DNA from: Macrostomum lignano
Lineage: Eukaryota
Direction: 5' to 3'
Assembly (NCBI GenBank): GCA_002269645.1
Contig: NIVC01004230.1
Span: 1 to 28,233, forward strand
Length of the DNA stretch: 28,233 nucleotides
Each line of letters opens with the position of its first letter. Position 1 is the stretch's first letter. Position numbers and translations under genes: made by a program. Shown here in pieces: positions 1 to 28,041 of this stretch. The notes under the pieces were generated by a model that worked only from the letters and a program-made list of their open reading frames with translations, searched no databases and was not told the DNA's origin.

Positions 1-154
1 TCCTTCGGAGGAGAAAGGGGAAGAACTCCCATCACCGAATTCCATTCCCTGAAATATCCACCAACTGAAATTGCATTTCTTGAACCCTATTTTCCCAATC
101 GTCTCCAAATTCTTTACAAAACCTTTCAAAGACCATGGTCAAAGACTCTCACGT

Positions 155-1310
155 CTCTGATATCTCCTCTCTCCTCTCTTTGCTATTATCGTGACTCTCT
201 TCTCTCTCCTCTCTCTCATCTCATCTCCACCCCTACTCCTTATTTATCTCTTCTCCCTTGTCTTTCGTCTGTACCTTCTCCTGTCTCTTGTCTCCTCTCT
301 TCTCTCATATCTCTCCTCTTCACTTCTGTCTCCTGTATCCTCTCTTCGCTCTATCTCTTCCTCTTCTCTTCTCTCTCATGTCATCTCTACTCACTTGTCT
401 ATCGTCTCTCTTAACCTCTCTTTCTTCTCTTTTCTCTCCTCTCTGCTCTCATTTTTTCATATCTCATATACGCTCTCACACTCTACTTTCTTGTCTCCCA
501 TCCTTCTTTCTCCTTTCCACTATCCCCTGTCTCTGTCTTCTCTCTTTTCTATCCTCTCGCATTCTCTCTTCTCTCCTCTCCTGTGCTCCTTTCATCTTCT
601 CCCCTCTCTTCTCTCCTCTCCTTGCTCCTTTCATCTTCTCCCCTCTCTTCTCTAAATCTCTAATCTCTTCTCTGTTATGTCCTCACTCATCTCTTCTCAT
701 CGCATCTCTCATCCCTCCTCTCCTCACTACTTTCCTCTCTTAACTCTCTCATCTCTGATCTTTCATCTCTCTCCTCTCTCCTCTCTCTCTTCTCCTTTCG
801 CTTCTCTCTCCTCTCTCTCCTTCTCATCTCTACTACCTTATTTATATCTTCTCCCTGATCTTCGTCTCTACTCTCTCCTGTCTCCTTCCTCCCCTCTTTT
901 CTCCTCTCTTCTCTCTCTCCCTCCTCTCTCATCTCTCATCCTTCATCTCACTCTTTCTTTCTCCTCTACTTTCCCCTCTCTTCTATTTTCTCTGTACGCT
1001 CTTATCCCTCATCTATTCTCTATCCTATCATCTCTCTTGTCTCTCTCTGTTATCTCATATCTCCCCTCTCATCTCCCTATCTCGCTTTTCTCTTCTCCCT
1101 CCTTTGTTCCGGCCTTACTCCCCTCTTCTCTCCCATCGTTTAGCGGAATGGGCGTTCGCGCCTTCCCGCTGCTGTGTCCCCCGGGACAGCCCTGCAGCTA
1201 AGTCTCCCATCTGTCATGTCTAATCTCTCCACTCATTTCTACTCTGTTTTCTATCATCTCATCTCTCTTCTCTTTTCATTCTTCTCTTTACTCTCTTCTC
1301 TGACTGATTG
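155..1310 (+). repeat. Long CT-rich (polypyrimidine/polypurine) tract of unit A
   Basis: Near-exclusive C/T on plus strand; homologous tracts at ~2715-3755, 5475-6195, 7695-8410, 12855-13130, 14950-15480 and a fragment at ~17245-17400. Confidence 0.95.
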
Positions 1311-1599
1311 AAGATGGCAAATTCATCAAGATCCTCTCCGCAAAGCAGTCCGTGCAACTGAAAACCATCGAAATCCTCTCCTTGAAACTTAATTCCATTA
1401 AAATCGTCTCCATAAAACCGAAATCAATCATAAATTATCTCCGCGAAACAGAAATACTCTCCGTGAAACTGAACACCATCGAAATCCTCTCACGAAACAG
1501 AAATCCTCTCCGTCAAAATTAAAACATTGAAATCGTCTCCGCTAACTGGACTCAATCAATTTTTTTCCGTCAAACAACTTAACACTCCGGATTCATTGG

Positions 1600-1632
1600 T
1601 TAGGGTTAGGGTTAGGGTTAGGGTTAGGGTTA
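1600..1632 (+). repeat. Interstitial telomere-like (TTAGGG)5
   Basis: Five perfect TTAGGG units at 1600-1629. Homologous tracts: 3985-4007, 6580-6618, 8797-8817, 10026-10047, 11653-11668, 13353-13380, 27086-27096. Confidence 0.95.
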
Positions 1633-2557
1633 AAGCTACACATAGCTTCGTGTTAAAAGGCACTGATAAAAATATTGAACTAATTGAATCAATTCATTGC
1701 GCAACCGATTTCACAGTCAGTAAGTATCAGTCTCAGTTAAAGTTATTAAAAACATTGCGCAATCTAAATCAACCCTCCAATACACAGCAGCAGTGAGAAG
1801 TTGAATCCTCCCCCCAACTTTGTCTATTACGTCTCGCAAAACTGAGTACAATTTTTGCAGAAAGTTAAAAGTATGGAAATACTTTTTTAAATGCTGAGCT
1901 TTTTCTTTTCATATTTAAAGCAAACAACTTATATCCCCGAACTCAGCGTTGCAAGATCTTTCCAGCAATATCAGTTTCTCCTATCAAAGTTTAAACTCGA
2001 GGAACATTTAGCGTTTAAAACTGTCTGATTTATAGCATTGAAGTATCGAGTGTACGTTAACTGCCTGCTTGCAAGTTGATGCATTGAATTTCAATGTCCA
2101 ACAAATACACAGGGCTGCCCATTGAAAGGCAGGAAAACTTATCAGTAGCCATATCATTGCGCAATTATCTATACAGTCAGCCAGTGAGCCAGGGTCCAAG
2201 TGTACACACGCAGCCACTGAGAACGCTCCCACCCCCCACTGGAAAGAAAATACACTACAGAGATAGGGAAAAGTTGTGGCGCAATCACTAAAAATTCATG
2301 CATTTTTTCAGCTCCAAGCAGAAAGAGGGGACAATTAAGATTATCAAAGGTCAAGATTCAAGTTTTCTGCTTTTTTGAGGATCTTAGAAATTAAAATTTC
2401 AGAATTAAAATAGCCTATAGCCGACCTCGGATAATTTCCAATCTTCCCATATAAGTTTCAACGCTGAGTTGGCACTATTCAAGGAGGAGTTGTCGAAATG
2501 ACAGACAGACAGACAGACAAACAACACGTCAACTTTAGTATATATAGACGAGTGGAA

Positions 2558-2574
2558 CTCCTCCTTCGGAGGAG
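2558..2574 (-). terminator. Helitron 3' subterminal hairpin (rolling-circle termination signal)
   Basis: Perfect 7-bp stem CTCCTCC/GGAGGAG with GAA loop on the element strand, 9 nt from the 3' end; repeated at each junction. Confidence 0.85.
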
Positions 2575-2977
2575 AAAGGGGAAGAACTCCCATCACCGGA
2601 ATTCCATTCCTGAATTATCCATCAACTGAAATTCCATGTCTTGAACCCATCTTCCAAATCGTCTCCAAATTCTTTACAAACCTTTCAAAGACCATAGCTC
2701 AAAGACTCTTACGTCTCTCATATCTACTCTCTCCTCTCTTCGCTATTATCGTGACTCTCTTCTCTCTCCTCTCTCTCATCTCATCTCTACCCCTACTTCC
2801 TTATTTATCTCTTCTCCCTCGTCTTTCGTCTGTACCCCCTCCTGTCTCCTCTGTTCTCTGTTCTATCACATCTCTATTCTTCACTTCTGTCTCCTGTCTC
2901 CTCTCTTCTCTCTTATCTCTCCTTCTTCTCTTCTCTCTCATATGTCATCTCTACTCACTTATCTATCGTCTCTCTTA

Positions 2978-2979
<2 letters not shown>

Positions 2980-3069
<90 letters not shown>
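2980..3069 (+). repeat. Pure (CT)45 microsatellite
   Basis: Uninterrupted CT dinucleotide run; the same position is only ~(CT)6 in other units. Confidence 0.95.
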
Positions 3070-3071
<2 letters not shown>

Positions 3072-6000
3072 TCTCATTTCTTATATCTCATATACGGTCT
3101 CAGACTCTACTTTCTTGTCTCCCATCTTTCTTTCCTCCTTTCCACTACCCCCCGTCTCTTCTCTTCTCTCTTTTCTAATCTCTAATCTCTTCTCTCTTAT
3201 TTCTCACTCATCTCTTCTCCTCGCATCTCTCATCTCTCCTCTCCTCACTACTTCCCTCTCTTAACTCTCTCATCTCTGATTTTTCATCTCTCTCCTCTCT
3301 CCTCTCGCTCTTTTCCTTTCGCTTCTCTCTCCTCCCTCTCCTCTCATCTCTACTACTTTATTTATATCTTCTCCCTCGTCTTTCGTCTCTACTCTCGTCT
3401 GTCTCCTTTCTCCCCTTTTTTCTCCTCTTTTCTCTCTTCTCTCTCCGCTCCTCTCTCATCTCTCATCCCTCATCTCACTCTTTCTTTCTCCTCTACTCTC
3501 CCTCTCTTCTATTTCCTCTGTACGCTCTTATCCTTCATCTATTCTCTCTCCTATTATCTCTCTTGTCTCCCTTTGCTATCTCATATATCCACTCTTATCT
3601 CCTCTCTCCTCTTCGCTTTTCTGTCCTTCGTTCCCGCCTTAATCCCTCTTCTCTCCATCTGTCATGTCTAATCTCTCCACTCATTTCTACTCTGTTTTCT
3701 ACCATCTCATATCTCTTCTCTTTTCATTCTTCTTTTTATTCTCTTCTCTGACTGATTGAAGATGCCAAATCAATCAAGATCCTCTCCGCGAAGCAGAAAT
3801 CCTGTCCGTGCAACTGAAAACCATCGAAATCCTCTCCGTGAAACTGAAGAGAATCGAAATCCTCTCCGCGAAACAGAAATCCTCTCCGTGAAACTGAAAA
3901 CCATCGAAATTCTTTCTTTTAAACTGGACTCAATCGAAATTTTCTCCGTCAAAAAGAATAAATATCAGGATTCATTGGTTATTGTTAAGGGTTAGGGTTA
4001 GGGTTAGAGCTACACACAGCTGCGTGTTCAAATAAAAAATGAACCAATTGAATCAATTGATTGCGCAACCGATTTCACAGTCAGTCAGTATCAGTCTCAG
4101 TTAAAGTTAGCAAAAAAATTGCGCAATCTAAATCAACCCTCCAGTACACAGAGACCGACCCCTTTTCAATACGCAGTGGCAGTTAGAAATTGAACCTCAA
4201 ACTTTTGGGGGCATTGAACAAAAAAATGAGTACAATCTTTGCATAAAGCTAAAAGTATGGAAATGGTTTTTTGAAACATTTTATATCCTCGAACTCAGCG
4301 TTGCAAGATCTTTTCAGCAGTATAAGTCTCTTCTCTTAAAGTTTAGAACTCGAAGAGCAGTTAGCGTTTGAAAGTTCCCGTTTTAAAGCATTGAAATGTC
4401 GCGTGTACGTTCACTGCCTGCCAAAGAGGCTCGCAAGTTTATTCATTTACTACACAGGCCGGCTATTACACAGGGCAGCCTATTGAAAGGCACAGATAAT
4501 AAAACAAAATTGATGGCGCAACTGATTTCACAGTATGTCAGTATCAGTCTCAGTTACAGTTAACAAAAAGATTGCGCAATCTAAATCAACCCTCCAATAC
4601 ACAGCGCCCGACCGCCTTCCACTACGCAGTGGCAATTAGCAATTGAACCCCCCAAATTTATCTCTGACCTATCGCAAAAATAAGTACAATCTTTGCAGCA
4701 AGTTAAAAGTAAAAGTAATAAAATCGTTTTTTGAATGCTGTGCTTTTAATTTTTACAGTTAAAGCAAACAACTTATATCCCTGAACTCAGCGTTGCAAGA
4801 TCTTTCCAGCAATATAAGTCTCTCCTCTCAAAGTTCAAAAATCGAGCAACAGTTAGCATTTGAAACTTTCTGATTTAAAGCATTGAAATATCGAGTGTAC
4901 GTTCACTGCCTGCTAGAGAGGCTCGCAAATTGATGCATTGAATTTCACTGTCCGCCAGTTAGCTAGGGTCCAAGTGTACACACGCCGCCACTGAGAACGC
5001 TCCTATCCCCCCACTGGAGAGAAAATACACTGCCAAGTTAGCAAAATTTTATGGCGCAATCACTTAAAATTCATGCAAATTTTCAGCTCCAAGCAGAAAG
5101 AGGGGACAATTAAGATTATCAAAGGTCAAGACCGCCGTTTTCTGCTTTTTTGAGGATCTTAGAAATTAAAATTTCAGAATTAAAATAGCCTATAGCCGAC
5201 CTCGGATAATTTCCAATCTTCCCATATAAGTTTCAACGCTGAGTTGCACTATTCAAGGAGGAGTTGTCGAAATGACACACACACAGACAGACAAACAACA
5301 CGTCAACTTTAGTATATACGAGTGGAACTCCTCCTTCGGAGGAGAAAGGGGAAGAACTCCCATCACCGGAATTCTATTCCCTGAAATATCCATCAACTGA
5401 AATTCCATGTCTTTAACCCTATCTTCCAAATCGTCTCCAAATTCTTTACAAAATCTTTCAAAGACCATAGCTCAAAGACTCTCAAGTCTCTCATATCTCC
5501 TCTCTCCTCTCTCTCATCTCATCTCTACCCCTGCTCCTTATTTATCTCTTCTCCCTCGTCTTTCGTCTGTACCTTCTCCTGTCTTCTGTCTCCTCTCTTC
5601 ACTCTTATCTCTCCCTCTTCTCTCCTCTCTCATATGTCATCTCTACTCACTTATCTATCGTCTCTCTTAACCCTCTCTCTCTCTTCTCTTTTCTCTTCTC
5701 TCTGCTCTCATTTCTCATATTTCATATACGCTCTGACACTACTTTCTTGTCTCCCATCTTTCTTCCTCCTTTTCACTATCCCCTGTCTCTTCTCTTCTCT
5801 CTTTTCTATTCTCTCCATTCTCTCTTTTCTCCTTTCCTTGCTCCTTTCATCTCTCTCCTCTCTCCTCACTCTCTTCTCCTTTCGCTTCTCTCTCCTCTCT
5901 CTCCTCTCATCTTTACTACCTTATTTATATCTTCTCCTAGTCTTTCGTCTGTACTCTCTCCTGTCTCCTCTCTCCCCTGCTCTCTCATCCCTCATCTCCT

Positions 6001-6219
6001 CATCTCACTCTTTCTTTCTCCTCTACTCTCCCCTCTCTTCTATTGCCTCTGTACGCTCTTATCCCTCATCTATTCTCTCTCCTATCATCTCCAATCTGTC
6101 ATGTCTAATCTCTCCACTCAATTATACTCTGTTTTCTATCATCTCTTCTCTCTTCTCTTTTCAGTCTTCTCTTTACTCTCTTCTCTGACTGATTGAAGAT
6201 GCCAAATCCATCAAGATCC

Positions 6220-6520
6220 TCTCCGCGAAGCAAAAATCCTGTCTGTGCAACTAAAAACCATCGAAATCCTCTCAGTGAAACTGGACTCCTTCGAAATCCT
6301 CTCCTTGAAACTTAAATCCATCAAAATTGTTTCCATAAAACAGAAATCAATCATAAATTATCTCCGCGAAACAGAAAGCCTCTCCGTGAAGCTGAACATG
6401 ATCGAAATCCTCTCCGTGAAACTGAACACTATGGAAATCCTTTCGTGAAACTGAACACCATCGAAATCCTCTCCACGAAACAGAAATCTTCTCCGTCAGA
6501 ATTTAAACATTGAAATCGTC
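6220..6520 (+). repeat. ~30-bp minisatellite (gaaatcctctccgtgaaactgaacaccatc and variants)
   Basis: Degenerate tandem copies in every unit (~1330-1545, 3775-3950, 8435-8740, 9855-9990, 11520-11610, 13150-13300) and in both arms of the large element (~15490-15610, ~27013-27055). Confidence 0.85.
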
Positions 6521-6579
6521 TCCGCTAAACTTGACTTAATCGATTTTTTTCCGTCAAACAACTCAACTCGCCAGATTCA

Positions 6580-6618
6580 TTAGGGTTAGGGTTAGGTTAG
6601 GGTTAGGGTTAGGGTTAG
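6580..6618 (+). repeat. Interstitial telomere-like tract (5 TTAGGG + 1 TTAGG)
   Basis: Direct reading of sequence. Confidence 0.95.
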
Positions 6619-7537
6619 AACTACGCACAGCTTCGTGTTAAAAGGCACAGATAAAAATATTGAACTAATTGAATCAATTCATTGCGCAACCGATTTCACA
6701 GTCAGTCAGTATCAGCCTCAGGTAAAGTTAACAAAAACATTGCGCAATCTAAATCAACCCTCCAATACACAGCAGCAGTGAGAAGTTGAACCCTCCCCCC
6801 AACAATCTTTGCAGATTAAAGTACAATCTTTGCAGAAAGTTAAAAGTATGGAAATCGTTTTTCAAATGCTGTGCTTTTTCTTTTCATATTTAAAGCAAAC
6901 AACTTATATCCCCGAACTCAGCGTTGCAAGATCTTGCCAGCAATATAAGTTTCTCCTCTCAAAGTTTAAAACTCGAGGAACAGTTAGCGTTTGAAACTGT
7001 CTGATTTATAGCATTGAAGTATCGAGTGTACGTTCACTGCCTGCTTGCAAGTTGATGCATTGAATTTCAATGTCCAACAAATACACAGGACTGCCCATTG
7101 AAAGGCAGGAAAACTTATCAGTAGCCATATCATTGCGCAATTATCTATAAAGTCAGCCAGTGAGCCAGGGTCCAAGTGTACACACGCAGCCACTGAGAAC
7201 GCTCCCACCCCCACTGGAAAGAAAATACACTACAGAGATAGGGAAAGTTGTGGCGCAATCACTAAAAATTCATGCATTTTTCAGCTCCAAGCAGAAAGAG
7301 GGGACAATTAAGATTATCAAAGGTCAAGATTCAAGTTTTCTGCTTTTTTGAGGATCTTAGAAATTAAAATTTCAGAATTAAAATAGCCTATAGCCGACCT
7401 CGGATAATTTCCAATCTTCCCATATAAGTTTCAACGCTGAGTTGGCACTATTCAAGGAGGAGTTGTCGAAATGACAGACAGACATACAGACAGACATACA
7501 GACAGACAAACAACGCGTCAACTTTAGTATATATAGA

Positions 7538-9762
7538 CGAGTGGAACTCCTCCTTCGGAGGAGAAAGGGGAAGAACTCCCATCACCGGAATTCTATTCCC
7601 TGAAATATCCATCAACTGAAATTCCATGTCTTTAACCCTATCTTCCAAATCGTCTCCAAATTCTTTACAAAATCTTTCAAAGACCATTGCTCAAAGACTC
7701 TCAAGTCTCTCCTATCTCCTCTCTCCTCTCTCTCATCTCATCTCTACCCCTGCTCCCTTATTTATCTCTTCTCCCTCGTCTTTCGTCTGTACTTTCTCCT
7801 GTCTTCTGTCTCCTCTCTTCACTCTTATCTCTCCCTCTTCTCTCCTCTCTCATATGTCATCTCTACTCATTTATCTATCGTCTCTCTTAACCCTCTCTCT
7901 CTCTTCTCTTTTCTCTTCTCTCTGCTCTCATTTCTCATATTTCATATACGCTCTGACACTACTTTCTTGTCTCCCATCTTTCTTCCTCCTTTTCACTATC
8001 CCCAGTCTCTTCTCTTCTCTCTTTTCTATTCTCTCCATTCTCTCTTTTCTCCTTTCCTTGCTCCTTTCATCTCTCTCCTCTCTCCTCACTCTCTTCTCCT
8101 TTCGCTTCTCTCTCCTCTCTCTCCTCTCATCTTTACTACCTTATTTATATCTTCTCCCCAGTCTTTCGTCTGTACTCTCTCCTGTCTCCTCTCTCCCCTG
8201 CTCTCTCATCCCTCATCTCCTCATCTCACTCTTTCTTTCTCCTCTACTCTCCCCTCTCTTCTATTGCCTCTGTACGCTCTTATCCCTCATCTATTCTCTC
8301 TCCTATCATCTCCAATCTGTCATGTCTAATCTCTCCACTCAATTATACTCTGTTTTCTATCATCTCTTCTCTTCTCTTTTCATTCTTCTCTTTACTCTCT
8401 TCTCTGACTGATTGAAGATGCCAAATTCATCAAGATCCTCTCCGCGAAGCAGAAATCCTGTCGTGCAACTGAAAACCATCGAAATCCTCTCGTGAAACTG
8501 GACTCCTTCGAAATCCTCTCCTTGAAACTTAAATCCATCAAAATAGTCTCCATAAAACAGAAATCAATCATAAATTATCTCCGCGAAACAGAAATCCTCT
8601 CCGTGAAGCTGAACATCATCGAAATCCTCTCCGTGAAACTGAACACCATCGAAATCCTTTCGAAACTGAAAACCATCGAAATCCTCTCCACGAAACAGAA
8701 ATCTCTCCGTCAAATTAAAACATTGAAATCGTCTCCGCTAAACTGACTTAATCGAATTTTTTCCGTCAAACAACTCAACTCTTCGGATTCATTGGTTTAG
8801 GTTAGGGTTAGGGTTAGAACTACGCACAGCTTCGTGTTAAAAGGCACTGATAAACTATTGAACTAATTGAATCAATTCATTGCGCTACCGATTTCACAGT
8901 CAGTCAGTCAGTATCAGTCGCAGTTAAAGTTAACAAAAACATTGCGCAATCTAAATCAACACTCCAATACACAGCAGCAGTGAGAAGTTGAACCCTCCCC
9001 CAACTTTATCTATTACGTCTCGCAAAACTGAGTACGATTTTTGCAGAAAGTTAAAAGTATGGAAATAGTTTTTTAAATGCTGTGCTTTTTCTTTTCATAT
9101 TTAAAGCAAACAACTTACATCCCCGAACTCAGCGTTGCAAGATCTTTCCAGCAATATAAGTTTCTCCTCTCAAAGTTTAAAACTCGAGGAACAGTTAGCG
9201 TTTGAAACTGTATGATTTATAGCATTAAAGTATCGAGTGTACGTTCACTGCCTGCTTGCAAGTTGATGCATTGAATTTCAATGTCCAACAAATACACAGG
9301 GCTGCCCATTGAAAGGCAGGAAAACTTATCAGTAGCCATATCATTGCGCAATTATCTATACAGTCAGCCAGTGAGCCAGGGTCCAAGTGTACACACGCAG
9401 CCACTGAGAACGCTCCCACCCCCCACTGGAAAGAAAATACACTACAGAGATAGGGAAAAGTTGTAGCGCAATCACTAAAAATTCATGCATTTTTTCAGCT
9501 CCAAGCAGAAAGAGGGGACAATTAAGATTATCAAAGGTCAAGATTCAAGTTTTCTGCTTTTTTGAGGATCTTAGAAATTAAAATTTCAGAATTAAAATTG
9601 CCTATAGCCGACCTCGGATAATTTCCAATCTTCCCATATAAGTTTCAACGCTGAGTTGCCACTATTCAAGGAGGAGTTGTCGAAATGACAGACACACAGA
9701 CAGACAGACAGACAAACAACACGTCAACTTTAGTATTAATAGATAGATAGATAGATAGAAGA
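7538..9762 (-). mobile_element. Non-autonomous Helitron unit D (2225 bp; very similar to unit C)
   Basis: 3' CTCG 7538-7541, hairpin 7547-7563; 5' TC at 9762 followed by (CTAT)n. Confidence 0.85.
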
Positions 9763-14715: not shown

Positions 14716-14716
14716 T

Positions 14717-14758
<42 letters not shown>

Positions 14759-16516: not shown

Positions 16517-16969
16517 AAGTTAATTAAGTTAGGTAAGTGAATAGAGTAAATTAAGAAAAAAATTTGGACGTTATTTTGGGAACAGATATTTTTTCAGATG
16601 AATGGCTGCTGTCACATTTATCGGGCTAGATTTGCACAGAACTGGTTTAGAACTGGTTGGGGTAGCCAGCTAAAGGTTTTAGCACCTTGAAAAAAATTGA
16701 CAAAAAGGCCTGTGTCGAGATCAGTAGAAAGGTCTGTAGGATTTTTTCATTTACTCGTAGACATTGCAGTCATTGTGTAGGGTAGGCCTGCAGCTGTACA
16801 CTGTGAGCGCATAGAGAAAATCCAAGAGTTTGGGGTTGATTGTTAGAGGGTTAAGCTTATTTACGCTATTGAGTCAATACACTGTTGTCGTGGTGGGGGC
16901 CGATAGTTATTGAGGTGTAAAGGTGCAGAGTGTCATTTTAAAGTTGATAGTTTAAAGTTTAAAGTTTGT

Positions 16970-17239
16970 TCTGTAGCCTACTGGGCATTCACTGTGTACA
17001 CTGAACCCTATCACTTCACCGCTCGCCACCCCCGCCACCCCGGCCCCAACACGGGTTATTTGAATTGAATAGTTGTCAGAAAATTTAAAGAATGATTTTT
17101 TCTTGAATGCTGTGCTTTTTGTTTTCATGTTTAAAGCAAGAAACTTATATCCCCGAACTCAGCGTTGCAAGCTCTTTCCAGCAATATAAGTCTCTTCTCT
17201 CAAAGTTTAAAACTCGAGGAACAGGTTGCGTTTGAAATT
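16970..17239. repeat. Direct repeat copy 1 (pairs with 26302-26596)
   Basis: tctgtagcctactgggcattcactgtgtacact...ctatcacttcaccg, GC-rich spacer, aacacgggttatt..., then unit-derived block ending gaaatt. Confidence 0.9.
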
Positions 17240-17625
17240 GCGTCTGTACTCTCTCCTGTATCTTTTCCCCCTCTTTTCTCATATCTTTCCCCCCCTCTTT
17301 TCTCATATCTTCTCTCTCCTCTCTCCTCTACTCTCTCATCTCTCATCCCTCATCTCACTCTTCTTTCTCCTCTACTCTCTCCTATTATCTATTTCCTTCC
17401 TATTAACTTTAACTTTAATAAATTATCTCTTGTAGACATTCTGATCAATGCTTGGCAGTTAGTTGTTTTGATAACGGAGTCTAATTTTCTTTGCATTAAC
17501 TGGTTTTTCGTACTCCATATCGCTTTCCCTACTGAGGAGCTTTGCAATATCCCCTCAAATCCCTGCACTCCTGTCACTCCCTCACCATTTGAAATATCCC
17601 ATCAGAACTCTGCACCCCTGTGACC

Positions 17626-17785
17626 CAGGGGCGTAGGGAGGGGGAGTTAGGGGGGATGTATCCCCCGAAGAGCCTGACCAAAACTTTTTTGTTGCCCTTT
17701 GTTGCTATACATGCTACCACGTGACTCTGCATAGCACTTTTACCTTGGTGTATCCCTCCGTAGGAAATTCCTGGCTACGCCCCTG
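17626..17785. mobile_element. 160-bp MITE with 11-bp terminal inverted repeats
   Basis: CAGGGGCGTAG (17626-17636) ... CTACGCCCCTG (17775-17785). CAGGGG termini resemble hAT-type MITEs; flanks cccctgtgac/cccctgtcac are only an imperfect duplication. Confidence 0.7.
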
Positions 17786-18739
17786 CCCCTGTCACGATCC
17801 CTCACCATTTGAATATCTCCAAGGAAGAATTCTCATTCGCTAAGTAATTTCGTGTAAATGATTTAGGCAAGTCGGAGACGAAAGTTATTAATTGAAATTT
17901 ATTAGAAAAGGCCTCAACACGTGTAAGTTTGAAGATTTCCTGCCCTTCTGTGCCTCATTTCACGAAGCCACATGTGTTCAGTTATGACTTAAAAAGGCGT
18001 TTTGACATTGTGTAGAAGCAGGTATTAAAGTTTAGCAATTGATTTGAGATTTAGTAATATATAGTGATGATATAAGCTGTAACAATCATACATTGAAGGA
18101 AATTTGTGAAGAGGCCTTTTTCATATAATTACTATTTGTATTTACATTGAAAAATTTAGAATTGTACATTATTTTACTTTAGTGACGCAGAAAAGTTAAA
18201 AAGCATAATAAAAATAGCAGTAGAAGTATCGAGCTGGGATTTTTATATAGGAAGTGAAAAATATGAAAGTGCTTAATTGTAGCAACTAAATTTTAATAAC
18301 AATTTTCCATCGCTTAGTTCTACTGATAGAAAATTTTGGCAAATAGCTATTTACAACCTGGGGAATGTATTTGTACGCATGATAATGGAGGGCATCCTGA
18401 AAAAAAGAATTTGTAGAGAAAGGATAAAGTGAATTTGATAAATTAATCGACAATTCTTTGTGGCTGATAGAATCCCCATATGGAACAGTTAATTGACAGT
18501 CTTGAATAGCTAGCAGCGAATTTTTCTAGCTTAGCGGGAATTTTCACAAAGGAGCCAAAATTGCCGAGTTGCTATGAATTTCGACACGGCGTATGTAATT
18601 TTTGATGCCCTGAATTATCAAAGGGAATATTTGAATGGGTGAAATACAAATGTATGAGTAATATACAATAAATGAAGGGATGACATGCAGAATTCATGAG
18701 GCACCCGATCAGGGCAAGCACGATAAAACACTTGATCAG

Positions 18740-18986
18740 ATTGAAGCAATTGCACGGAGCTGCAGCTGGGCGCAAATTGGTCACAGCTTGGGCTTCAGCG
18801 ACTCCGAAGGCTGTCCAGGGGACTCTGGCCGGTGGCGTCCTCAGCTACCGGCGTGTCGACCCTCAGATCCCTGAGCAGCAACGGGCCATTGGGACAGCAG
18901 CAACGGGCGGGCTGATGGCACATTCAGCTCGGGTCGATGTTGAGAGGCCAGTCGTTGAAGTCAAGTTTGAGCAGCTCCGGCGGGAA
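18740..18986 (-). pseudogene. Decayed, frameshifted fragment of a Pif1/Helitron helicase (copy 2)
   Basis: Pieces FPPELLKLDFNDWP / QHRPELNV / NGPLLLRDLRVDTPVAEDATG align with FPPELLNRLDPNGLP / HHRLELKV / NGTRLLLRELRDNVLLAEVATG of exon 9 (20254-20072); several indels; weaker similarity continues to ~18740. Confidence 0.75.
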
Positions 18987-19339
18987 GGAAAATGAGGGGA
19001 GACTTTAAAGCATGAATCAAGTGTTCTAGGGCTATAAAAATCTTTTAATGTTTTAATATTAAAAAGCAATAAAAAAGTGGGGCTTGATCGGGTGCAAATA
19101 AATTAATAGAAAGTGCGAAATATCAGTCTAGCCTGCAGCAGGGCGTTTCAGATGTTAATCTTAATTTCAAAATTTCATTATTTACTCGTATACTGCACGT
19201 GAAGCATTATTTGCTGTTAAATTTTTAGTTTGAACTTGCAAATTATAGCTTAAATAGAAATTAAGTTATAGATATTTTACTTTTGGCTGAGCTGCAGCCC
19301 AGACTTATTATTTACAATGACAAATCCGGCAAAAGAAGG

Positions 19340-19532
19340 ACACGAACCCGGTCACCTCGGCGCGCTGCTTTGCCTGCGAGGGAGCTGTCGCAGGTCAGTG
19401 TTGCGCGCCGCGGGATGAAGGCCGACCGCCTTTGAAACTGGGCCGCAGCGACCACGGCGACCAGTTCATTGTCCCGCAGATCTCGATGAAGTAACCGGGC
19501 TCTACGTCAGCGGCGAGGTCAGAAGTTGCGTG
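19340..19532 (-). pseudogene. Decayed fragment of a Pif1/Helitron helicase (copy 1)
   Basis: 19500-19408 translates ARLLHRDLRDNELVAVVAAAQFQRRSAFIPR, ungapped 17/31 identical to TRLLLRELRDNVLLAEVATGIYRGRQVFIPR of exon 9 (20131-20039); two in-frame TGA codons just upstream. Confidence 0.75.
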
Positions 19533-19765
19533 CTAGGGTGAGAAAATAAAAATTTGGCAGTCAAATTGAGTATGAAAATTCGAGTCAATTTCCGTTATAG
19601 ACTCCCTAAGCATCTATGTCGGTGTCGGCTACTTTCAGACTTAAATTTTGACTTTTAATTTCCATATTGCCGGTATTGCCATATTTATATTTCGGGTCAC
19701 CCAAAAAAGTACAGGCTGAAATACACTAAATTCAGCTAACGACACTAAAATATGTATTTAGGGAT

Positions 19766-21558
19766 TTAACAATTGAACTTACCAATGAGCTGCCGCAGTA
19801 CGATGTTCTGCGTCCGACCGCCTGGGGCGCGCACCTTGACGCCCGATGCACTCCGCGCACGACTCAGAGCCACGTAGAGCTGGCCGTGCTGAAAGCAGCC
19901 TGTCGTCAGGTCGACGGCGTAGGTGCTCAGCGATTGGCCCTGGCTCTTGTGGATGGTCATGGCGAAGCATGGCCGGATTGGAAACTGCAGGCGGCGGAAC
20001 GTGAAGGGCAGCTCAGTAGGACTCGGCTCCTGTGGGATTCGCGGGATGAACACCTGCCGCCCACGGTAGATGCCAGTGGCGACCTCCGCGAGCAGCACGT
20101 TGTCCCGCAGCTCACGCAGCAGCAGCCGGGTTCCGTTGCACAGCAGCGGTGGGTCGAGGTTCCGCATCATCATGACCGGCATGCCGACCTTGAGCTCCAG
20201 CCGGTGATGCGGCAGGCCGTTGGGATCAAGTCGGTTCAGCAGCTCCGGTGGAAAATTGGTAGCTGCCACATCGTCGTTCGGAATTGAATCGACTGATAGA
20301 TAGGCCCGACTGTCTCCAGGAAAGAGCGCCAGGCAGGCGGCGTTGGTCTCGTCTACCGTCCTGTTGAGCGGCGACAGAATGCTCCGCTCCGCGAACATCT
20401 GGTCACGGTGCGGGCTTGGCTCGAACGACGGGTAGACGTGCCGGATGAGCTGCTCAGTGGTCGTGTCATCAGGCATGAGAATCTCGCTAGGCAGGGAAAC
20501 CATGCCCTCTTCGTCCTCTGGTAGCTCTCCGTTGCCAACCTAATGGAATTGAGGAATAAAAGAGACATTTCACGTCATAGAGTTATTTATTTAGTCTCTG
20601 TAAGCATGCAGAAATCGATTTAGAAGAATATTGTACATATTTTGAAATTTGTTTTGGAACGTAGATTATTAATGAAAAGCATTAATTTAAAATTTCGTGC
20701 AAAATAGTGAAGGAATTATTTTCTCACCTGCATAAGAAAATCTGCGTAGCTTTTGGCATCAGAGTCGCTCTCGAGCCGCAGATTTCTGGTCAAGTGGTGC
20801 TGCTGGAAATGCGGCCACAAAGCCGACTGAGTCAGGCAGGCGTCGATCGTGTTCGCCTGCGTTCCTCCGGGCACCACAGCCAGCAGCTGGCGGAAGTCGC
20901 CGGCTAGCACCAGCAGCGCTCCTCCGAACGGCTGCTCGACCCGCAGCAGATCTCGCAGAGACCGGTCCACGATCTCCAGGTCCTTGCGGTGAGTCATCGG
21001 TGCCTCATCCCACACGATGATTCGCGCATTCCGCAGAATCTCTGCGAGCTTGCTCCGCCTGCCGATGGAGCAGAAGGCACTGTCTTGCCGAACTGCGCAG
21101 ACGGGTATCTTAAACCTGGGCGGAGAGGATGAAGATTCAAGTTGAACAGCAAAGCTCGATATGAATTGATTAGGAAACGGAAGCCGCTAAAATATGCAAG
21201 CAAGAGTCACAAAAAGTGCTAGCAAAGCAGAAATAAAATCAGAAAGGGCGGCTCACATTGAATGTGCGGTCCTTCCACCGGGAAGAATGGTCGCCGCAAT
21301 TCCAGACGATGCCACCGCTACAGCAATCTGACGCTTCGCTCGAGCAGAATTAAGCAGAAGCGTCAGCAAGAATGTCTTGCCCGTGCCGCCGGGAGCATCG
21401 ATAAAGTACAGACCGCCACCGCCGGCCTGCATGCTGGACTGAATGGCGTCGAAAATGGCCCGCTGCTCGCCAGTCAGGGTGCCGATTTGCGCCATGACTT
21501 TTGCCTGGAGCTCAACTGCTTCTTCGTTTGTCGGCAGGCAGTCAGTAAGTCGGTGGGT
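19766..21558 (-). CDS. Pif1-like helicase domain exons 7-9 of RepHel
   Basis: ORFs 21253..21495, 20716..21015 and 19766..20503 carry helicase motifs I-VI; junctions AHSM/FKIP and FLMQ/VGNG restored by GT-AG introns 21116-21256 and 20540-20727. Confidence 0.95.
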
Positions 21559-24500
21559 CTGGGAAAGAGAAAAGAAATTGCTTATAGAAGATTTTGTTTA
21601 TCAGTTCTGCATTAAAGCTGCACTTTATAGCCTTCCTCAATAGTAAAATTTTCATATTACGTGATTATTTTTTCCGCATAAATGAGTACTGGTAAGAAAT
21701 AAAATTACAGAAATAATACTTTCATAAGAATAAGTGCACTTACCTGATCCGGCTCTACCCGTGGCTTAGGCAGGCCGTAGGCAGGCAGCTCGGATCCTCC
21801 CATGGTCTCCAGAAAGTTCTCCAGTTGCCGCAGCACTTCCGACTCGGCAGCTTCGGTGCTGTAGCCCTGGTGCAGCAGGTCGCCAGCCATGTCACTGGAG
21901 AACTCGCACCACAGCTTCGGTGGATCGCTGGGGTTACCATGGGTGAGAATTGCCGCGAAAAGCCGGCGCAGAGCTGCTGGCAGCCGCGTCTCCACAGCCT
22001 CGCGCATGCACAGCTGCCAGTGCTTGTCGTCTTCCAGCAGCCCTCTCGCCTGGCAAGCGGCCTTGAAGGTCGGCAGCAGGACGCCGTCAACAGTGCGCAG
22101 CGCCTCGAATGACGTCGGGCCGCGCACGTTCACCAAGAGCAAGCGCAAGTAGAAGCAGTCGCCCATCCGAGGACTGACTGTGTAAATGCGGCCGATATTG
22201 CCGGTCGTCAGAACGCCAGCTGGCTGACCGGCAGTCTCTCGGCCGCGACCTGCGCGATGCCAGGTGTGCGCCCTGTTGTCCCAGGTGAAGTGCCGGGGCA
22301 CCTCTTGGTAGAGCAGGCCGCGGGCGACTTCATCTTGGCGACAGAGCTGGCAAGGTGTATGAATGTGTCATGATATTAATTATTACAGTAAAAAAAGCTG
22401 AGTAATGTTGACTGCTTTAATTAATTTGAAGCAATCTAGTATAAGCATTGCCTAGAGTACACAGAGATATAAGCAGAAGCAATAGTTGGCTGAAAGACTT
22501 ACATCAAAGAAGGCGGTCAGAGTCGTGTCTTTAGGCCGAGCAGCAACAGCCTGGGCCGTCTCGCGAGTGAAGAAGACCCGCTGCTCGCCCTTCAGATGGA
22601 CGGCGAGTCTGATCACAGGGGGGTATCGGCTGTGCACTTCAAAGCCCAGGATCGTATTGACCGCTTCCATTGGACCGATGTACCTGCCCAGAAGGTAGTC
22701 CTTGATCTCGTCAATCATCTTGCCGTGCGCCGACTGACCGACAGTAGGGGCAGTAGTGCTGGCTGACGCAGATGCAGCCTCTTGTCGGACTTGATAGGCA
22801 GCCATGTCGCTACCCTTGGTGATGTACTTGACGACATACTTGATCGCCTTGACTGTCGCGCAGATCTCGACATTAAGGTGACAGCGAAACTCGCGCAGCA
22901 GCGCTGGGCAGTACGGAACCACCCAGCGGTTGTCGAAGGTGAAATTCGCCTTCTGACCGCCGCGCAGCTTGGCCATCTTTGTCACCGAAAAGCCGCCCAT
23001 CTCGACAGATCTGCGGCAGTAGTGCGGGTAGCCGTCTTCTTCAACCCTAGTGGCTGCTAGGAATTCCCTCGGGTAGCGTTTGCTGCAGACCCCGTTCTCC
23101 ATGCACGGCGCCGCCGGGTTGAGCTGCTGGCCACACGGACCATGCAGCAGATTCTCGGCGACCAGCTTGTGCAAGTCCGCGTCGGCAACTGGGTCCGGGA
23201 TCTCGGCGCTGATGATTGAGTCGTACTGGTCCGGCTTCAGCTTGTCGGCTAGCCACAGCAGAGCGTGCACGTGGGGAAGACCTGGATGTGGATAAAATTT
23301 AATTTTATTGAAATTAACGAAATTTTGGAGGCGACAGATAATGCTACAGTTTAAAGCTTAAAAGTACACTTGCCTCGCTTCTGGTACTCCAGCGAGCAGA
23401 CTCGAGCCAGAGTATCTCCAAACAGACTCTTCAGCCTGTTTAGGAAGGCCTTCTTCTTCAGCTCGAACACCCGGGCGGTGATGTCCGGCCGATCGACGGC
23501 AGTCTGGCCCGGAAGCAGCTCAGCCAGAATCTCGGGCCACTTGGGGTTACACGTCATCGTCAGGAACAGGTCTGGGCGGCCATAGGCGTGAACGTATGCC
23601 ATGGCATCCTGCTGACGCTCAAGACGGTAACGTGGCCCTCCGACGTAGCTGGAGGTCAGGATGATATGCTTCCCGACTTCTTCCGGGTTGCCGTCGTCCT
23701 CGTGCAGCGCGTCTCGGAGACCGCGAAGACTCTCGGACTGCAGGTCTTTCTGGTGCTGCCGAATGAAGCTGAGGCGCTCGGACTCGATCTTGGCAGCCTG
23801 GTCCACCAGGTACTGCTGGAAGAGCCGGCGACCGTACAGCAGGCTGTTGAACTGGCCTGGCCGCACCTGAATCATGAAGGCGTAGAACTTCATGTTGGTG
23901 ATGCCGCGATCCTGCTTGAGCCCAATGTGCCAGCCGTCCTCACCGAAGGGGAATAGGAGCACATACTCCAACGGATCATAGGAGCGGTGGGTCTCGCAGA
24001 TATCTTGCAGGCCTGCGAATGAGTAAAAATAGAATTAGGAAGTAACTCTAGGGGAGAATAAAATTTTACGGCTCCTATAAATTAATTGCAGCTACTTCAT
24101 ATAAGCCATAATTGCAGTAAATTAATAATGTGCCTGTCAATGCCATAGAACTCACCACCATCTCTCAGACGCAAGATCACATCCCGTCGCTGCGCCTGAA
24201 TTACGCCTTCATCATCGCCAAGGTCCGTTAGGATGCCAACTTCACTGCACTCGGGCAAGTTGAAGCGCCGGACATGCTCCCCAGATGGGCGGGCATCTGA
24301 GTTAATCACGACCTTGGCGTTCTGCAGCTGCGGATCGCTGCGCAGCAAGTCGACTGCGGACTTGAAGCTGCGCACGTAGCTGTTGCAGTCGTGCAGAGTT
24401 GCCTGCAGTTCCGCCAGCAGACGGCTGTTCAGCCCGGTGGCCCACTGTAGTCGAGTTTGCAGCTCCTCGTCTACAAAGAAGACCTGGCAGAACCGAGCCG

Positions 24501-25967
24501 GGTCCCCGGGTTCGGCAACAGGCTGCCGATCCGATGGTGCATCTGACCATGGAGGATAAGCTCGGGTTCCAGCCGGGCTGCTCTCGCTGTGCGGCACCGA
24601 GAGATGTCATGTGGAGGGCGCCGTTGTACTTCCGAATGTCCTTGAGGAACTGCGAGCTGTCCGGATGCTCGCCAGTCAGCAGTCGCTTCAGGACATCGGG
24701 CGGATCACGGCGCGGCTCCAGGTGGGTCTGCCGTGGGGTTTAGAAAATTCCTCATCTTAAACAGGTTATAAAAATTACGGCATGGCAATCAGTAAAAAAC
24801 TAAAAAATGTAGCATTTGCATGCTCTTGCTAGGGTTTCATTAAGTGTCTAAAGCTTCATGCCATTGATAAAGTAATCAATAAAAGATCAATAAAACTGAT
24901 TAATAAAAACTGGACTCACCTTGCCAGAGTGGCAGCAGATGCTGGCTGGCTCGTCATTCCAGCGTAGCGCGCCGCAGTGCGGACACTGACGGTCCATGCG
25001 GCCGAGGACATGTGGCTGGTGTGCCAATTTCAGCAGTCTGAGAAGCAAAAAATGGGAAATGTAATTATGAGGATCATTTTAGTAAAGATGCTGAATGTGG
25101 ATATAAAGTCCTATTACGCTAGGAGCCTTTTACGTAAAGGTTGTAATGTATGGGCTACAAAAATATACATTAAAAATAATAATAAGAACTAATGAAAAAA
25201 GAACTAATAATACTTATCATAGAATATTATACACAGTAAAAGCATTGATGTACATTGTGAAATAAAAATGAGTGAAACGCCTACCTGTCTCGGCGCCGGT
25301 CTGCTTGCGCATGCAGACGCAGGTCGTGCTCATCAGCGGCCTCAGCCGTGCGACGCTGACTCTGTCGCTGCCGCTGCACGTCAAGGCGATGCATGTGGAC
25401 CGTCTCCGATTCACTCGCGCGGCATTCCGCTGTGTGCTGCCGGTCTAGCTCGCGGCGATGCTGGCGCTCGGCTTCACCCTCAGCTGCGCGGTCTTCAGCT
25501 GTTCGCAGCCGGTCCTGCTCGAGGCGATGCTGGCGCTCGGCTTCACCCTCAGCTGCGCGGTCTTCAGCTGTTCGCAGCCGGTCTGCTCGAGGCGATGCTG
25601 GCGCTCGGCTTCACCCTCAGCTGCGCGGTCTTCAGCTGTTCGCAGCCGGTCTGCTCGAGGCGATGCTGGCGCTCGGCTTCACCCTCAGCTGCGCGGTCTT
25701 CAGCTGTTCGCAGCCGGTCCTGCTCGAGGCGATGCTGGCGCTCGGCTTCACCCTCAGCTGCGCGGTCTTCAGCTGCTCGCAGCCGGTCCTGCTCGAGGCG
25801 ATGCTGGCGCTCGGCGTCGCCCTCAACTGCGCGTCTTTCCGCCTGGCAAAGCCGATTCTGCTCCAGGCGTGCTGCATGCTCCTCTGGTGTCTCGGAGTCC
25901 CTCGCTTCTTGGCACCAGATGCAGCGCGTGTAGAGCGGGACAAATTGCCTCGACCGCGTTTAGGCAT
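19766..25967 (-). CDS. Helitron RepHel transposase (Zn-finger + HUH Y2 Rep endonuclease + Pif1-family SF1B helicase), 9 exons, five -1 frameshifts in this sequence
   Basis: Manually spliced exons (minus): 25967-25285, 25037-24920, 24727-24156, 24012-23374, 23281-22503, 22346-21744, 21558-21257, 21115-20728, 20539-19766. Phases are all consistent after restoring 5 single bases; total ~1620 aa. Motifs: CPHCGALRW..ICCHSGK (Zn finger), PDLFLTMTCNPKW (Rep motif 1), EYQKRG/LPHVHALLW (HUH), KYVVKYITKG (Y2), FIDAPGGTGKT (Walker A), IVWDEAPM (Walker B), GDFRQLL, FAMTIHKSQGQSL, HGQLYVALSR. Exons GC-rich, introns AT-rich, with GT-AG ends except one GC-AG. Confidence 0.95.
22503..24012 (-). CDS. Rep (HUH, two-tyrosine) domain exons 4-5 of RepHel
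   Basis: ORFs 23351..23971 and 22452..23270 contain RPDLFLTMTCNPKWPEI, EYQKRG+LPHVH and KYVVKYITKGSD; joined in frame across intron 23282-23373. Confidence 0.95.
25317..25875 (-). repeat. 69-bp (23-aa) coding tandem repeat in RepHel exon 1
   Basis: Unit anchors at 25386, 25455, 25524, 25592, 25660, 25729, 25798, 25867 (spacing 69 or 68); repaired frame reads EQDRLRTAEDRAAEGEAERQHRL repeats. Confidence 0.9.
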
Positions 25968-26301
25968 TACAAAAGAAAGGAATATATTTAAAGAAAATAT
26001 TAAAAAAATATTGAAAGGCGATTGAAACAATCCGGCCAAATGTGGATTGGTGGTATCGAAAAAAACGTGACTTTATATAAAGCAATTAGCTGTCCCGTGC
26101 CTGCAGATTTGCGTCAAAAATCTCCACTTCTCTACACCAAGTGTACAAACATCGCTTTGATGAGTAAAACGCTGCCTAACCAACGAATCAGCGGACAGTT
26201 CTCTATGGATTAAATTTTTTCTTATCTTCAATGTACATACAGACAATCGATTTAGTTTATTAATTCAGGATTCACCGATGACTAAGCACGATTCATTGCT
26301 A

Positions 26302-26596
26302 TCTGTAGCCTACTGGGCATTCACTGTGTACACTAACCCTATCACTTCACCGCAGCCGCACCCCGGCCCCACCGCAGCCCGCCACCCCCAGCCCCAACGC
26401 GCCCTAACACGGGTTATTTAAATTGAATAGTGTCAGAAAATTTAAAGAATGATTTTTCTTGAATGCTGTGCTTTTTGTTTTCATGATTAAAGCAAGAAAA
26501 TTATAACCCCGAACTCAGCGTTGCAAGCTCTTTCCAGCAATATAAGTCTCTTCTCTTAAAGTTTAAAACTCGTGGAACAGTTAGCGTTTTGAAATT
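26302..26596. repeat. Direct repeat copy 2 (pairs with 16970-17239); candidate upstream regulatory module
   Basis: Same sequence order as copy 1 with a longer GC-rich spacer; lies 335 bp upstream of the RepHel ATG on the minus strand. Confidence 0.9.
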
Positions 26597-28041
26597 TACC
26601 GATTTCCCGACTGCTTGCCTGAGAGGCTCGCAAGTTTATTCATTGAATTTCACTGCCAAGCTAATACACAGGGCCGATAATAAAACCAATTGAATCTCGA
26701 CAGTCTATCTATTTACACTGTACAACTGCTATGTACACTCGGCCCAAGCCCTACCCCGTTCTGGGGAAACCATTAAATTTAACTCAACCCCCCAACACGC
26801 GGGGGGTTTTATTTGCATTGAACCCAGAACACGCGCACCCACCACCCCTCAATACACAGCGGCCCGCGGGCGGAGGTTGGGGTGGCTATTTTTACAAACT
26901 GGCTGCAGCCCCAGGCAGAGTAGAAAAAGAAAGTTATTGGGGGTCAAAAAGGCAGTTTTCTGCTTTTTTGAGGATCTTAGAAATTAAAATTAAAAAAACA
27001 GAAATTAAAACAGAAATCCTCTCCGTGAAACTGGACTCAATCGAAAGTTTCTCTGTCAAACAACTGAACTCTCAGGATTCAGTGGTTAGGGTTAGGTTGG
27101 AGCTTCACAGAGCTGCGTGCTAAAAGGCAGCGATAATAAAACATTGAACCAATTGAATCAATTGATTGCGCAATATATTTCTGTGTTAGTCAGTATAAGT
27201 CTCAGTTAAAGTTAACAAAAAGTTTGCGCAATCTAATCAACCTCCAATACAAAGCAACTGACCCCATTCCTATACACAGCGCCAGTTAGAAGTCGAAACC
27301 CCCAACTTTATCTCTCACTCTCGCCAAAATGAGTACAATCTTTGCAGAAAGTTTAAAGTATGGAAATAGTTTTTGCAATGCAGAGCTTTTAGTTTTCATA
27401 TTTGAAGCAAACAATTTATATCCATGAAATCAGCTTTGCAAGTTCTTTCCAGCAATATAAATTTTTTTCTCTCAAAGTTAAAAACTTGAGCAACAGTTTT
27501 GCGTTTGAAACTTTCTGATATAAAGCATTGAAATATCGATTGTACGTTCACTGCCTGCTAAAGAGGCCCGCAAGTTTATGCATTGAATTTCAAGGTTCAA
27601 CAAAATCACAGGGCTGCCTATTGAAAATTAGAACACAAATCTTTGCGCAATTGTCTATACAGTCAGCCAGTGAGCCAGGGTCGATTGTACACAGGCAGCC
27701 ATTTAGAACGCCCCATCCCCCCACTGGAGAGAAAATACACTGCAGAGATAGGGAAAAGTTGTGGCGCAATCACTTGAAATTCATGCAAATTTTCAGCTCC
27801 AAGCAGAAAGAGGGGACAATTAAGATTATCAAAGTGTCAAGACCGCCGTTTTCTGCTTTTTTGAGGATCTTAGAAATTAAAATTTCAGAATTAAAATAGC
27901 CTATAGCCGACCTCGGATAATTTCCAATCTTCCCATATAAGTTTCAACGCTGAGTTGGCACTATTCAAGGAGGAGTTGTCGAAATGACAGACAGACACAC
28001 AGACAGACAGACAAACAAACGCGTCAACTTTAGTATAGAGA

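Follow-up and report, generated by a model that had tools for sequence, protein, structure and literature searches.

Mixed head-to-tail Helitron arrays in Macrostomum lignano and their possible growth by end-directed accretion

Contig NIVC01004230.1 of Macrostomum lignano (assembly GCA_002269645.1), which we analyse over its whole length of 28,233 bp and call the window, contains only Helitrons, all of them on the minus strand and each joined by its 3' end to the 5' end of the next. Read along that strand, the tail of a non-autonomous element of a second family is followed by one 13.25-kb element that codes for a RepHel protein, and then by seven non-autonomous elements of 1.3-2.8 kb (minis) that share the coding element's termini. 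That the window is a genuine head-to-tail Helitron array is almost certain. We further propose, tentatively and with slightly more doubt than belief, that end-directed accretion, the joining of incoming copies to the ends of resident ones, was the main way in which the array was built. Taken together, a Helitron array and its growth by accretion are probably the best explanation of the locus, a grading that is a compromise between our near certainty about the array and our more guarded view of its growth.

Results

An array of Helitrons joined end to end

The window was compared with five other M. lignano loci (L001-L005), reached through the RepHel protein cluster and a related cluster; L001 is contig NIVC01001383, and the five comparison contigs range from 48 kb to 2.68 Mb. 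Both ends of the window lie inside repeats, position 1 in a terminal hairpin loop and the final 43 bases in a 17-bp tandem repeat. The contig thus ends inside the array. A self-BLAST dot-plot bears out the repeat structure described in an initial annotation of the window, with direct repeats of 1.3-2.8 kb over 1-15,400 and both repeat arms recurring at 14,805-15,434 and 27,002-28,037. The orientation implied in that annotation has to be reversed, since it is the minus strand that carries both RepHel and the elements. In minus-strand order, the units are:

28042 to 28233, minus strand: 3' part of a second-family non-autonomous Helitron, with 17-bp tandem repeats at 28191-28233
14792 to 28041, minus strand: RepHel-coding Helitron, 13,250 bp, 5' end TCTCTATACTAAAGTTGACG, 3' end hairpin-TTCCACTCG
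12698 to 14791, minus strand: Mini 1, 2,094 bp, 5' TATATAC..., 3' TTCCACTCG
11395 to 12697, minus strand: Mini 2, 1,303 bp, three stacked 5'-end motifs at 12697-12590, 3' TTGGCCTCG, hairpin loop ATC
9763 to 11394, minus strand: Mini 3, 1,632 bp, 5' TTAATAC..., 3' TTGGCCTCG, with a C-to-T change in the stem (a G-T mismatch in DNA)
7538 to 9762, minus strand: Mini 4, 2,225 bp, 5' TC plus a (TTCTA)(TCTA)n linker
5319 to 7537, minus strand: Mini 5, 2,219 bp, with 98-100% identity to an L002 unit over the 3' 1.85 kb
2549 to 5318, minus strand: Mini 6 (unit B), 2,770 bp, ~100% identical to L001 5998-8775
1 to 2548, minus strand: Mini 7, cut by the contig end inside the hairpin loop, its final ~14 nt missing

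Six of the seven minis that the initial annotation had counted as complete are so, and only the seventh is truncated, by the contig end within its hairpin. The same annotation had placed the coding element at the head of the array, which does not hold, as a second-family 3' end lies directly upstream (28042-28233) and coding copies sit mid-array in L001, L003 and L005.

Judged by their predicted protein, their hairpin, their lack of inverted termini and the boundaries of their copies, the elements are canonical-type Helitrons. The RepHel protein joins an HUH Rep nuclease with two tyrosines to a PIF1-like superfamily 1 helicase, and this gene (Helitron_like_N and PIF1 domains, HUH, YxxxY and Walker A motifs) and the subterminal 3' hairpin agree with the initial assignment to Helitrons. 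The marks of Helentrons or Helitron2, asymmetric terminal inverted repeats and, in Helentrons, an AP-endonuclease domain C-terminal to the helicase, are absent: there is no inverted terminal match, the protein stops just past the C-terminal helicase motifs, and no endonuclease shows up in Pfam. A search for terminal inverted repeats likewise found no word of 7 nt or more of the reverse-complemented first 30 nt within the last 300 nt. Nor does the locus have the makeup of a satellite, since its units are unequal in length, 75-93% identical and drawn from several families, and include a 13-kb coding unit. The initial annotation had read the locus as a transposon-to-satellite conversion in progress, which these mixed and unequal units do not demonstrate; compared as sequences, their pattern looks like accretion with recombination rather than homogenisation.

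Structure of the junctions

All seven junctions of the initial annotation, at 2548/9, 5318/9, 7537/8, 9762/3, 11394/5, 12697/8 and 14791/2, proved exact when the sequence was printed at each. On the minus strand a junction reads as the hairpin CTCCTCC-GAA-GGAGGAG, 9 nt ending in CTCG, and the next 5' end, (TC)(TA/TCTA)n-TATATACTAAAGTTGACG; on the plus strand it reads ...TTTAGTAT(A/T)n(AGA)|CGAG(TGG/GCC)AACTCCTCC-TTC-GGAGGAG.... The 3' end on the minus strand is the hairpin plus TTCCACTCG or TTGGCCTCG, fused to a 5' end, and the same two ends bracket the coding element (14792-28041), as had been stated. Each 3' hairpin has a 7-bp stem and a 3-nt loop, lies 9 nt from the terminus and folds with DNA parameters at -6 to -9 kcal/mol, in keeping with the short GC-rich hairpin that precedes a Helitron 3' end by ~10 nt. 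Over 28 copies the stem is conserved and the loop variable (GAA, ATC, AGA, AAC, GGA). The second family has a different stem, CCCCC/GGGGG, at the equivalent position, and ends in the canonical CTAG; the first family ends in CTCG, with the rare variants CTTC and CTCT.

2558 to 2574, minus strand: representative 3' hairpin with a 7-bp stem and a 3-nt loop, set 9 nt from the terminus
5328-5344, 7547-7563, 9772-9788, 11404-11420, 12707-12723, 14801-14817, minus strand: other 3' hairpins
28055 to 28068, minus strand: second-family hairpin CCCCC-ATC-GGGGGG, followed by a terminal ...GATTGCTAG that directly abuts the coding element's TC

Head-to-tail joining holds at all seven of these window junctions, at the CTAG|TC junction at 28041/2, and at 28 of 28 junctions over the six loci. 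Every one of these 28 3' termini is followed by a 5' end in a single orientation, and none (0/28) by host DNA. Canonical Helitrons insert between a host A and a host T and make no target-site duplication. Within the arrays, T follows the 3' end in 28/28, and what precedes the 5' end is almost always the G of CTCG or CTAG. At the one array edge available, in L005 (~5270), the flank reads ...TTCCT|TCTAAATATAC, and the preceding base is not A. Parsing the junctions instead as ...CCAC|TCG... can be rejected, as this L005 edge and the CTAG-family junction assign TC/TA, and not CTCG, to the downstream element.

A variable TC/TA-rich linker of 0-26 nt separates CTCG from the conserved ATACTAAAG. The array was initially called seamless, which is right in that no host DNA separates the units and needs qualifying for this linker. 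Between two copies of the 2.77-kb unit that are ~100% identical the linker differs, one having none and the other TCTCTTCTACA; such unlike linkers on near-identical copies imply that the linker is made at joining, or else that it is a very unstable microsatellite.

Complete elements are in places preceded by short 5'-end fragments stacked two or three in series (20-100 bp each, starting ...ATACTAAA):

12697-12590 of the window, L005 5270-5400 and L001 25468-25542: stacked 5' ends

A minus-strand open reading frame (ORF) at 7448-7687 that spans a 3' arm, its hairpin and the next 5' end returned no matches as a protein query, and no JGI metagenome contig matched the 3' end in an exact-pattern scan.

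Copies lose homology at the proposed termini

Comparisons among independent copies show, at the level of sequence, that the proposed termini are real element boundaries. Copies are similar only between the two termini, with identity stepping down at both the 5' and the 3' end, and boundaries falling elsewhere, which would have counted against the initial annotation, were not seen among near-identical copies. The coding copies are preceded by three kinds of neighbour (a CTAG-ending element in the window, a mini ending ...CCACTCG in L001 and L003, and a mini ending ...GGCCTCG in L005), and their homology begins at the 5' end in all four. At the other end, the window and L004 match at 98-100% up to 14792; identity is 94-97% through the next unit's generally conserved 5' arm and 84-90% farther on, where there are large indels.

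The minis behave in the same way. Unit B (5318-2549) matches L001 5998-8775 at ~100% over 2.77 kb, and the match drops at once to 81%, then to ~45-75%, on the upstream side of its 5' end. Mini 5 and its L002 counterpart are 98-100% identical up to CTCG, after which identity is 66% and then ~50% within the next 100 bases, the downstream elements being unrelated. At the upstream edge of the L005 array the 5'-end motifs begin in non-Helitron DNA, and the termini are conserved between RepHel families that are only 79% identical in protein.

Mixed families and ages in six arrays

Families found in the window also form same-orientation head-to-tail arrays in at least five other contigs, where the order of units differs. 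At least three 3'-end types, from two or three families, are interleaved. A complete second-family member in L001 (322-3218), which starts TATATACTAAAAATG, carries 24-bp and 17-bp minisatellites and ends CCCCC-ATC-GGGGGG...GATTGCTAG, sits between two family-1 units, and the sequence switches exactly at the junctions.

Physical neighbours are often not close relatives. In a neighbour-joining analysis of a 330-bp segment of the 5' arm, the closest relatives of many units (99-100% identical) lie in other contigs, and adjacent units are 83-94% identical. The coding element of the window is 97-99.4% identical to the copies in L001, L003, L004 and L005; coding copies differ by 0.6-3%, yet lie among minis that differ by 7-25%. 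The units around unit B, examined as an A-B-A insertion footprint, do not give a clean one, being identical only in the 5' arm and 82-93% elsewhere.

How the arrays may have grown

In the model that we favour, RepHel would normally cut after hairpin-CTNG and join the 3'-OH to the TC 5' end, forming a circular intermediate. It would also attach an incoming copy, by its 5' end, to the 3' terminus of a resident one, which amounts to integration at an existing 3'/5' junction. Each such joining would add one unit in the same orientation without intervening host DNA, and the hypervariable TC/TA linker would be its scar. The array might then be reshuffled by local tandem duplication, by recombination between shared arms, and by the occasional mobilisation of several units past an unrecognised terminator. 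We infer the joining step from the heterologous junctions, the uniform orientation and the lack of any solo 3' end in what is a biased sample. Given mixed families and ages together with breakpoints at the termini, accretion is the simplest reading. A further proposition, that this Helitron lineage uses a resident 3' terminus (hairpin plus CTNG, then T) as its preferred or even obligatory integration site, is possible and rather doubtful.

The usual account of Helitron tandem arrays (PMC9248874, PMC11934779, PMC5148889) is that of rolling-circle concatemers, in which circle replication or failed termination yields multimers that integrate at once and become heterogeneous later. Precise 3'-5' junctions in a single orientation are what this account predicts, and it is also consistent with the neighbouring units that are identical or nearly so in the 5'-arm segment. 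It sits poorly, however, with families of unrelated interiors and different 3' hairpins being joined by the same kind of junction, with neighbours that are often 83-94% identical while their ~100% copies sit in other arrays, and with young coding copies (98-99.4%) placed among far more diverged minis. As a single template cannot give interleaved families and ages unless a mixed array already existed, we consider concatemers an unlikely origin. A different possibility is that a satellite-like 2-kb repeat grew by unequal crossing-over, the "termini" being merely internal sequence, with the RepHel segment brought in by a chance insertion or by gene conversion through shared arms, and with the copies on other contigs reflecting genome duplication. 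The mosaic units, the multi-unit blocks shared between contigs, the three different rearranged 5' structures of the coding copies and the extensive recent duplication in M. lignano would all suit such a history. Against it, heterologous families switch exactly at the junction, the homology of near-identical copies breaks exactly at the 5' and 3' termini, the L005 array edge starts at a 5' end, unit order differs between contigs, and the termini have a Helitron anatomy that is kept between RepHel families 79% identical in protein. Breakpoints placed exactly at Helitron termini cannot be accounted for by unequal crossing-over within a satellite, and we regard duplication as very unlikely to be the main process. 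That the array is an artefact, a chimeric or collapsed PacBio assembly of dispersed copies, is scarcely credible: the contig is short (28 kb) with both ends in repeats, and the 1-bp deletions of the coding copy could be consensus errors, but a like architecture with different unit orders recurs in five other contigs (48 kb to 2.68 Mb), and units differing by 7-25% are easy to assemble correctly.

Several observations weigh against accretion, or at least against accretion acting alone. Family 1 departs from the canonical CTRR 3' terminus by one base, at the third position. Of the TC 5' ends that the initial annotation had assumed, those at three of the seven mini junctions (2548, 7537 and 9762) and at 28041 hold, giving 4 of 8 in the window; the rest are TA or TT. 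Adjacent units can be identical in the 330-bp 5'-arm segment (60/1290 and 3606/5809 in L003) or 99% identical (minis 4 and 5 of the window), and a two-unit block is common to the window and L003 at 95.6%, so that local duplication or multi-unit copying must also occur. The units are mosaics, in one example with 100% identity in the 5' arm and 82-93% elsewhere, which implies that arrays often exchange sequence by recombination or gene conversion, a process that could give a false impression of dispersal. Large recent duplications are known in M. lignano and are able to copy whole arrays. Across the six loci we found no paralogous "empty junction" cleanly filled by an extra unit. Finally, all six loci were reached through RepHel proteins, a sample biased toward the neighbourhoods of coding copies, and solo insertions may exist elsewhere.

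The RepHel-coding element and its accessory gene

The RepHel gene comprises nine exons, and its introns are GT-AG except for one GC-AG intron. An open frame of 1,311 codons extends from 24606 to the stop, across six introns, and holds the HUH motif (HVH), a two-tyrosine YxxxY motif (YVVKY) and a Walker A GxGKT motif (GTGKT). On the minus strand Pfam places Helitron_like_N at 23971-23351 (E 2.8e-53), PIF1 at 21495-19766, and Pif1_2B. The spliced product is 100% identical to M. lignano PAA48122.1 (BOX15_Mlig001947g5); outside M. lignano it is closest to Helitron helicases of animals, with 43-46% identity. The GC-AG intron (donor GCAAGT), at 23282-23373, divides the Rep motif YQKRG|LPHVH.

19766 to 25967, minus strand: RepHel gene, nine exons
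25967-25285, 25037-24920, 24727-24156, 24012-23374, 23281-22503, minus strand: RepHel exons 1-5
22346-21744, 21558-21257, 21115-20728, 20539-19766, minus strand: RepHel exons 6-9
25417 to 25837, minus strand: 69-bp coding tandem repeat in exon 1 (23 amino acids, AEGEAERQHRLEQDRLRTAEDRA), 6 copies, two of them 68 bp
27000 to 28041, minus strand: mini-type 5' module with the 5' arm, (TGTC)n, a ~0.9-kb "A" region, (CCCTAA)2 at 27084-27095 and the first 30-bp repeat
14792 to 15611, minus strand: 3' module common with the minis, with 30-bp tandem repeats at 15492-15611, a purine-rich tract and a ~160-bp 3' arm
14801-14817 and 14792-14795, minus strand: hairpin and terminal CTCG at the 3' tip of the coding element
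26377 to 26596, minus strand: upstream one of two ~220-bp direct repeats, corresponding to a fragment of the mini "A" region
17021 to 17239, minus strand: downstream copy of the ~220-bp direct repeat, 92% identical to the upstream copy
16085 to 16516, minus strand: ORF2, a 143-amino-acid coiled-coil protein, ~3.2 kb downstream of RepHel on the same strand

The coding element had been described as autonomous. A RepHel gene is indeed present; autonomy is uncertain for the window copy, whose N-terminal exons are out of frame. The L001 copy is 99.4% identical and has an annotated 1,688-amino-acid product, and relative to it the window carries five 1-bp deletions, one near 25,900 (exon 1), two in copies of the 69-bp repeat, and two in exon 3 (24558 and 24506). 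We cannot tell whether these are real inactivating mutations or consensus errors of long reads, and an intact paralogue exists either way. The 69-bp repeat varies in number between 99%-identical elements, with 6 copies in the window vs 9 in L001 (~10100-10760).

The 5' part of the coding element is composite. Its mini-type module is joined at ~27000 to position ~135 of a second, truncated 5' arm, while in the L001 coding copy the 5' arm is shorter, at 190 bp, and continues without a break into sequence that matches the window from 26955 onward. The ~220-bp direct repeats bracket the RepHel gene region, and recombination between the two copies would delete RepHel.

ORF2 contains a PPAKRP motif and is annotated as a gene in L003 (18950-19381). 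An intact homologue in L002 (~15950-16410) has 64% amino acid identity and a ratio of nonsynonymous to synonymous substitution rates (dN/dS) of ~0.44, and belongs to a RepHel family that is only 79% identical in protein to that of the window. The single other match in a large protein database, 92% identical, is on a 595-bp metagenome contig. As to function, Pfam gives only weak coiled-coil matches; ORF2 may be a lineage-specific accessory protein.

Non-autonomous units and embedded sequences

The minis had been read as derivatives of the coding element. They are instead several subfamilies, with units of 1,303-2,770 bp that are 75-93% identical, and what they have in common with the coding element is limited to between ~190 bp and 1 kb at the 5' end and, at the 3' end, ~0.8 kb. 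A simple origin by internal deletion is rejected, as 15611-17020 (including ORF2) has no counterpart in any mini and the 5' kilobase of the coding element is itself of mini type.

Each unit carries one telomere-type tract, (TTAGGG)2-6 on the plus strand, always between the ~0.9-kb 5' region and the 30-bp repeats. Polypyrimidine tracts on the plus strand (purine-rich on the element strand) vary in length, reach a GC skew of -0.75 and are missing from the two shortest units.

1598 to 1627, plus strand: representative telomere-type tract, (GGTTAG)5
3989-4006, 6583-6618, 8800-8817, 10030-10047, 11651-11668, 13351-13380, 27084-27095: further telomere-type tracts
~160-1300, 2700-3750, 5480-6190, 7700-8410, 12900-13125, 14960-15480, plus strand: polypyrimidine tracts

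Similarity between the window and a distant M. lignano Helitron family (P0092, one copy, at locus L007) is limited to low-complexity purine/pyrimidine tracts. Elsewhere in the sampled loci, a second-family element at L002 17204-24008 contains ~269 copies of a 23-bp repeat that reach the end of the fetched DNA. The first mini of the L005 array contains, at 5669-7407, a ~1.74-kb element with terminal inverted repeats (CCGTGTGGCCATCTGATCAGG ... CCTGATCGGATGGCCACACGG) that is probably a cut-and-paste DNA transposon or a miniature inverted-repeat transposable element (MITE). A predicted fibronectin-type-III host gene, on the opposite strand, spans the whole L001 array (1-26661); presumably the array sits in an intron of that gene, or the gene model is wrong.

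Discussion

The locus and its relatives bring together intact RepHel copies, several non-autonomous families and dozens of precise heterologous junctions, and thus offer natural material for separating concatemers from end-directed integration. If integration is end-directed, the strict joining of different families becomes notable, and M. lignano would harbor a eukaryotic rolling-circle transposon with end-specific target choice, analogous to IS91 and IS608. The arrays are also a way into how transposons seed long tandem repeats. For M. lignano genomics they account for one class of contig breaks and repeat-rich regions, and they flag gene models that belong to transposons, including the conserved accessory ORF.

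In IS91/ISCR and IS608 elements the sequence cut at the element end is also chosen as the target, giving oriented, end-adjacent insertions and tandem multimers. The target logic that we propose would be similar by analogy, although these elements are prokaryotic, use different proteins and have no fused PIF1 helicase. Helitron transposition has been reconstituted for one bat element. We know of no experimental evidence linking a Helitron RepHel to end-related target choice, and to our knowledge the origin of tandem Helitron arrays is still explained by analogy only.

Relation to known Helitron arrays

As the initial annotation had noted, head-to-tail Helitron arrays are documented, and our literature search found no paper on such arrays in M. 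lignano. The bat Myotis lucifugus has tandem Helitrons (Pritham and Feschotte 2007, cited in PMC9248874), and arrays of Helitron-1_DPe lie on the Y chromosome of Drosophila pseudoobscura and D. affinis (PMC9248874). As the sections of PMC9248874 on these arrays describe them, they were detected and counted with artificial queries joining tail to head, and they contain coding copies and many partial ones. These are, like the M. lignano elements, canonical RepHel Helitrons with a 3' end fused to the next 5' end. In those same sections, however, the bat and Drosophila arrays repeat a single element, whereas in M. lignano several subfamilies are interleaved, together with a second family that has a different 3' hairpin; and, unlike in those species, the sampled M. 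lignano loci hold no copy outside an array.

In plants, tandem and truncated Helitrons make up centromeric arrays (Xiong et al. 2016, cited in PMC5148889 and PMC11934779). Tandem arrays are documented in rice, maize and other plants, centromeres included, and occasionally in fungi. Multiple-terminus Helitrons are described in Fusarium (PMC5148889), where both explanations, rolling-circle concatemers and insertion into a different Helitron's 5' end, have already been raised. The M. lignano arrays resemble these in their tandem units and stacked extra 5' termini. The FoHeli termini of Fusarium are non-canonical, however, and tandem copies are rare there, whereas in the sampled M. lignano loci the array is the rule.

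A subtelomeric Helitron-like repeat in Hydractinia (PMC11934779) and the Heli2Xen minisatellites of Xenopus (PMC12001565) are likewise Helitron tandem arrays with variable unit length and an association with telomere-type sequence. They carry internal minisatellites, as do the M. lignano elements with their 30-bp, 24-bp, 23-bp and 17-bp repeats. The Hydractinia and Xenopus repeats are homogenised and their monomers are fragments of an element, whereas the M. lignano units are complete, with both termini, and are not homogenised. Head-to-tail Helitron arrays are thus already known from other lineages, and what is distinctive of M. lignano is the mixing of element families within them.

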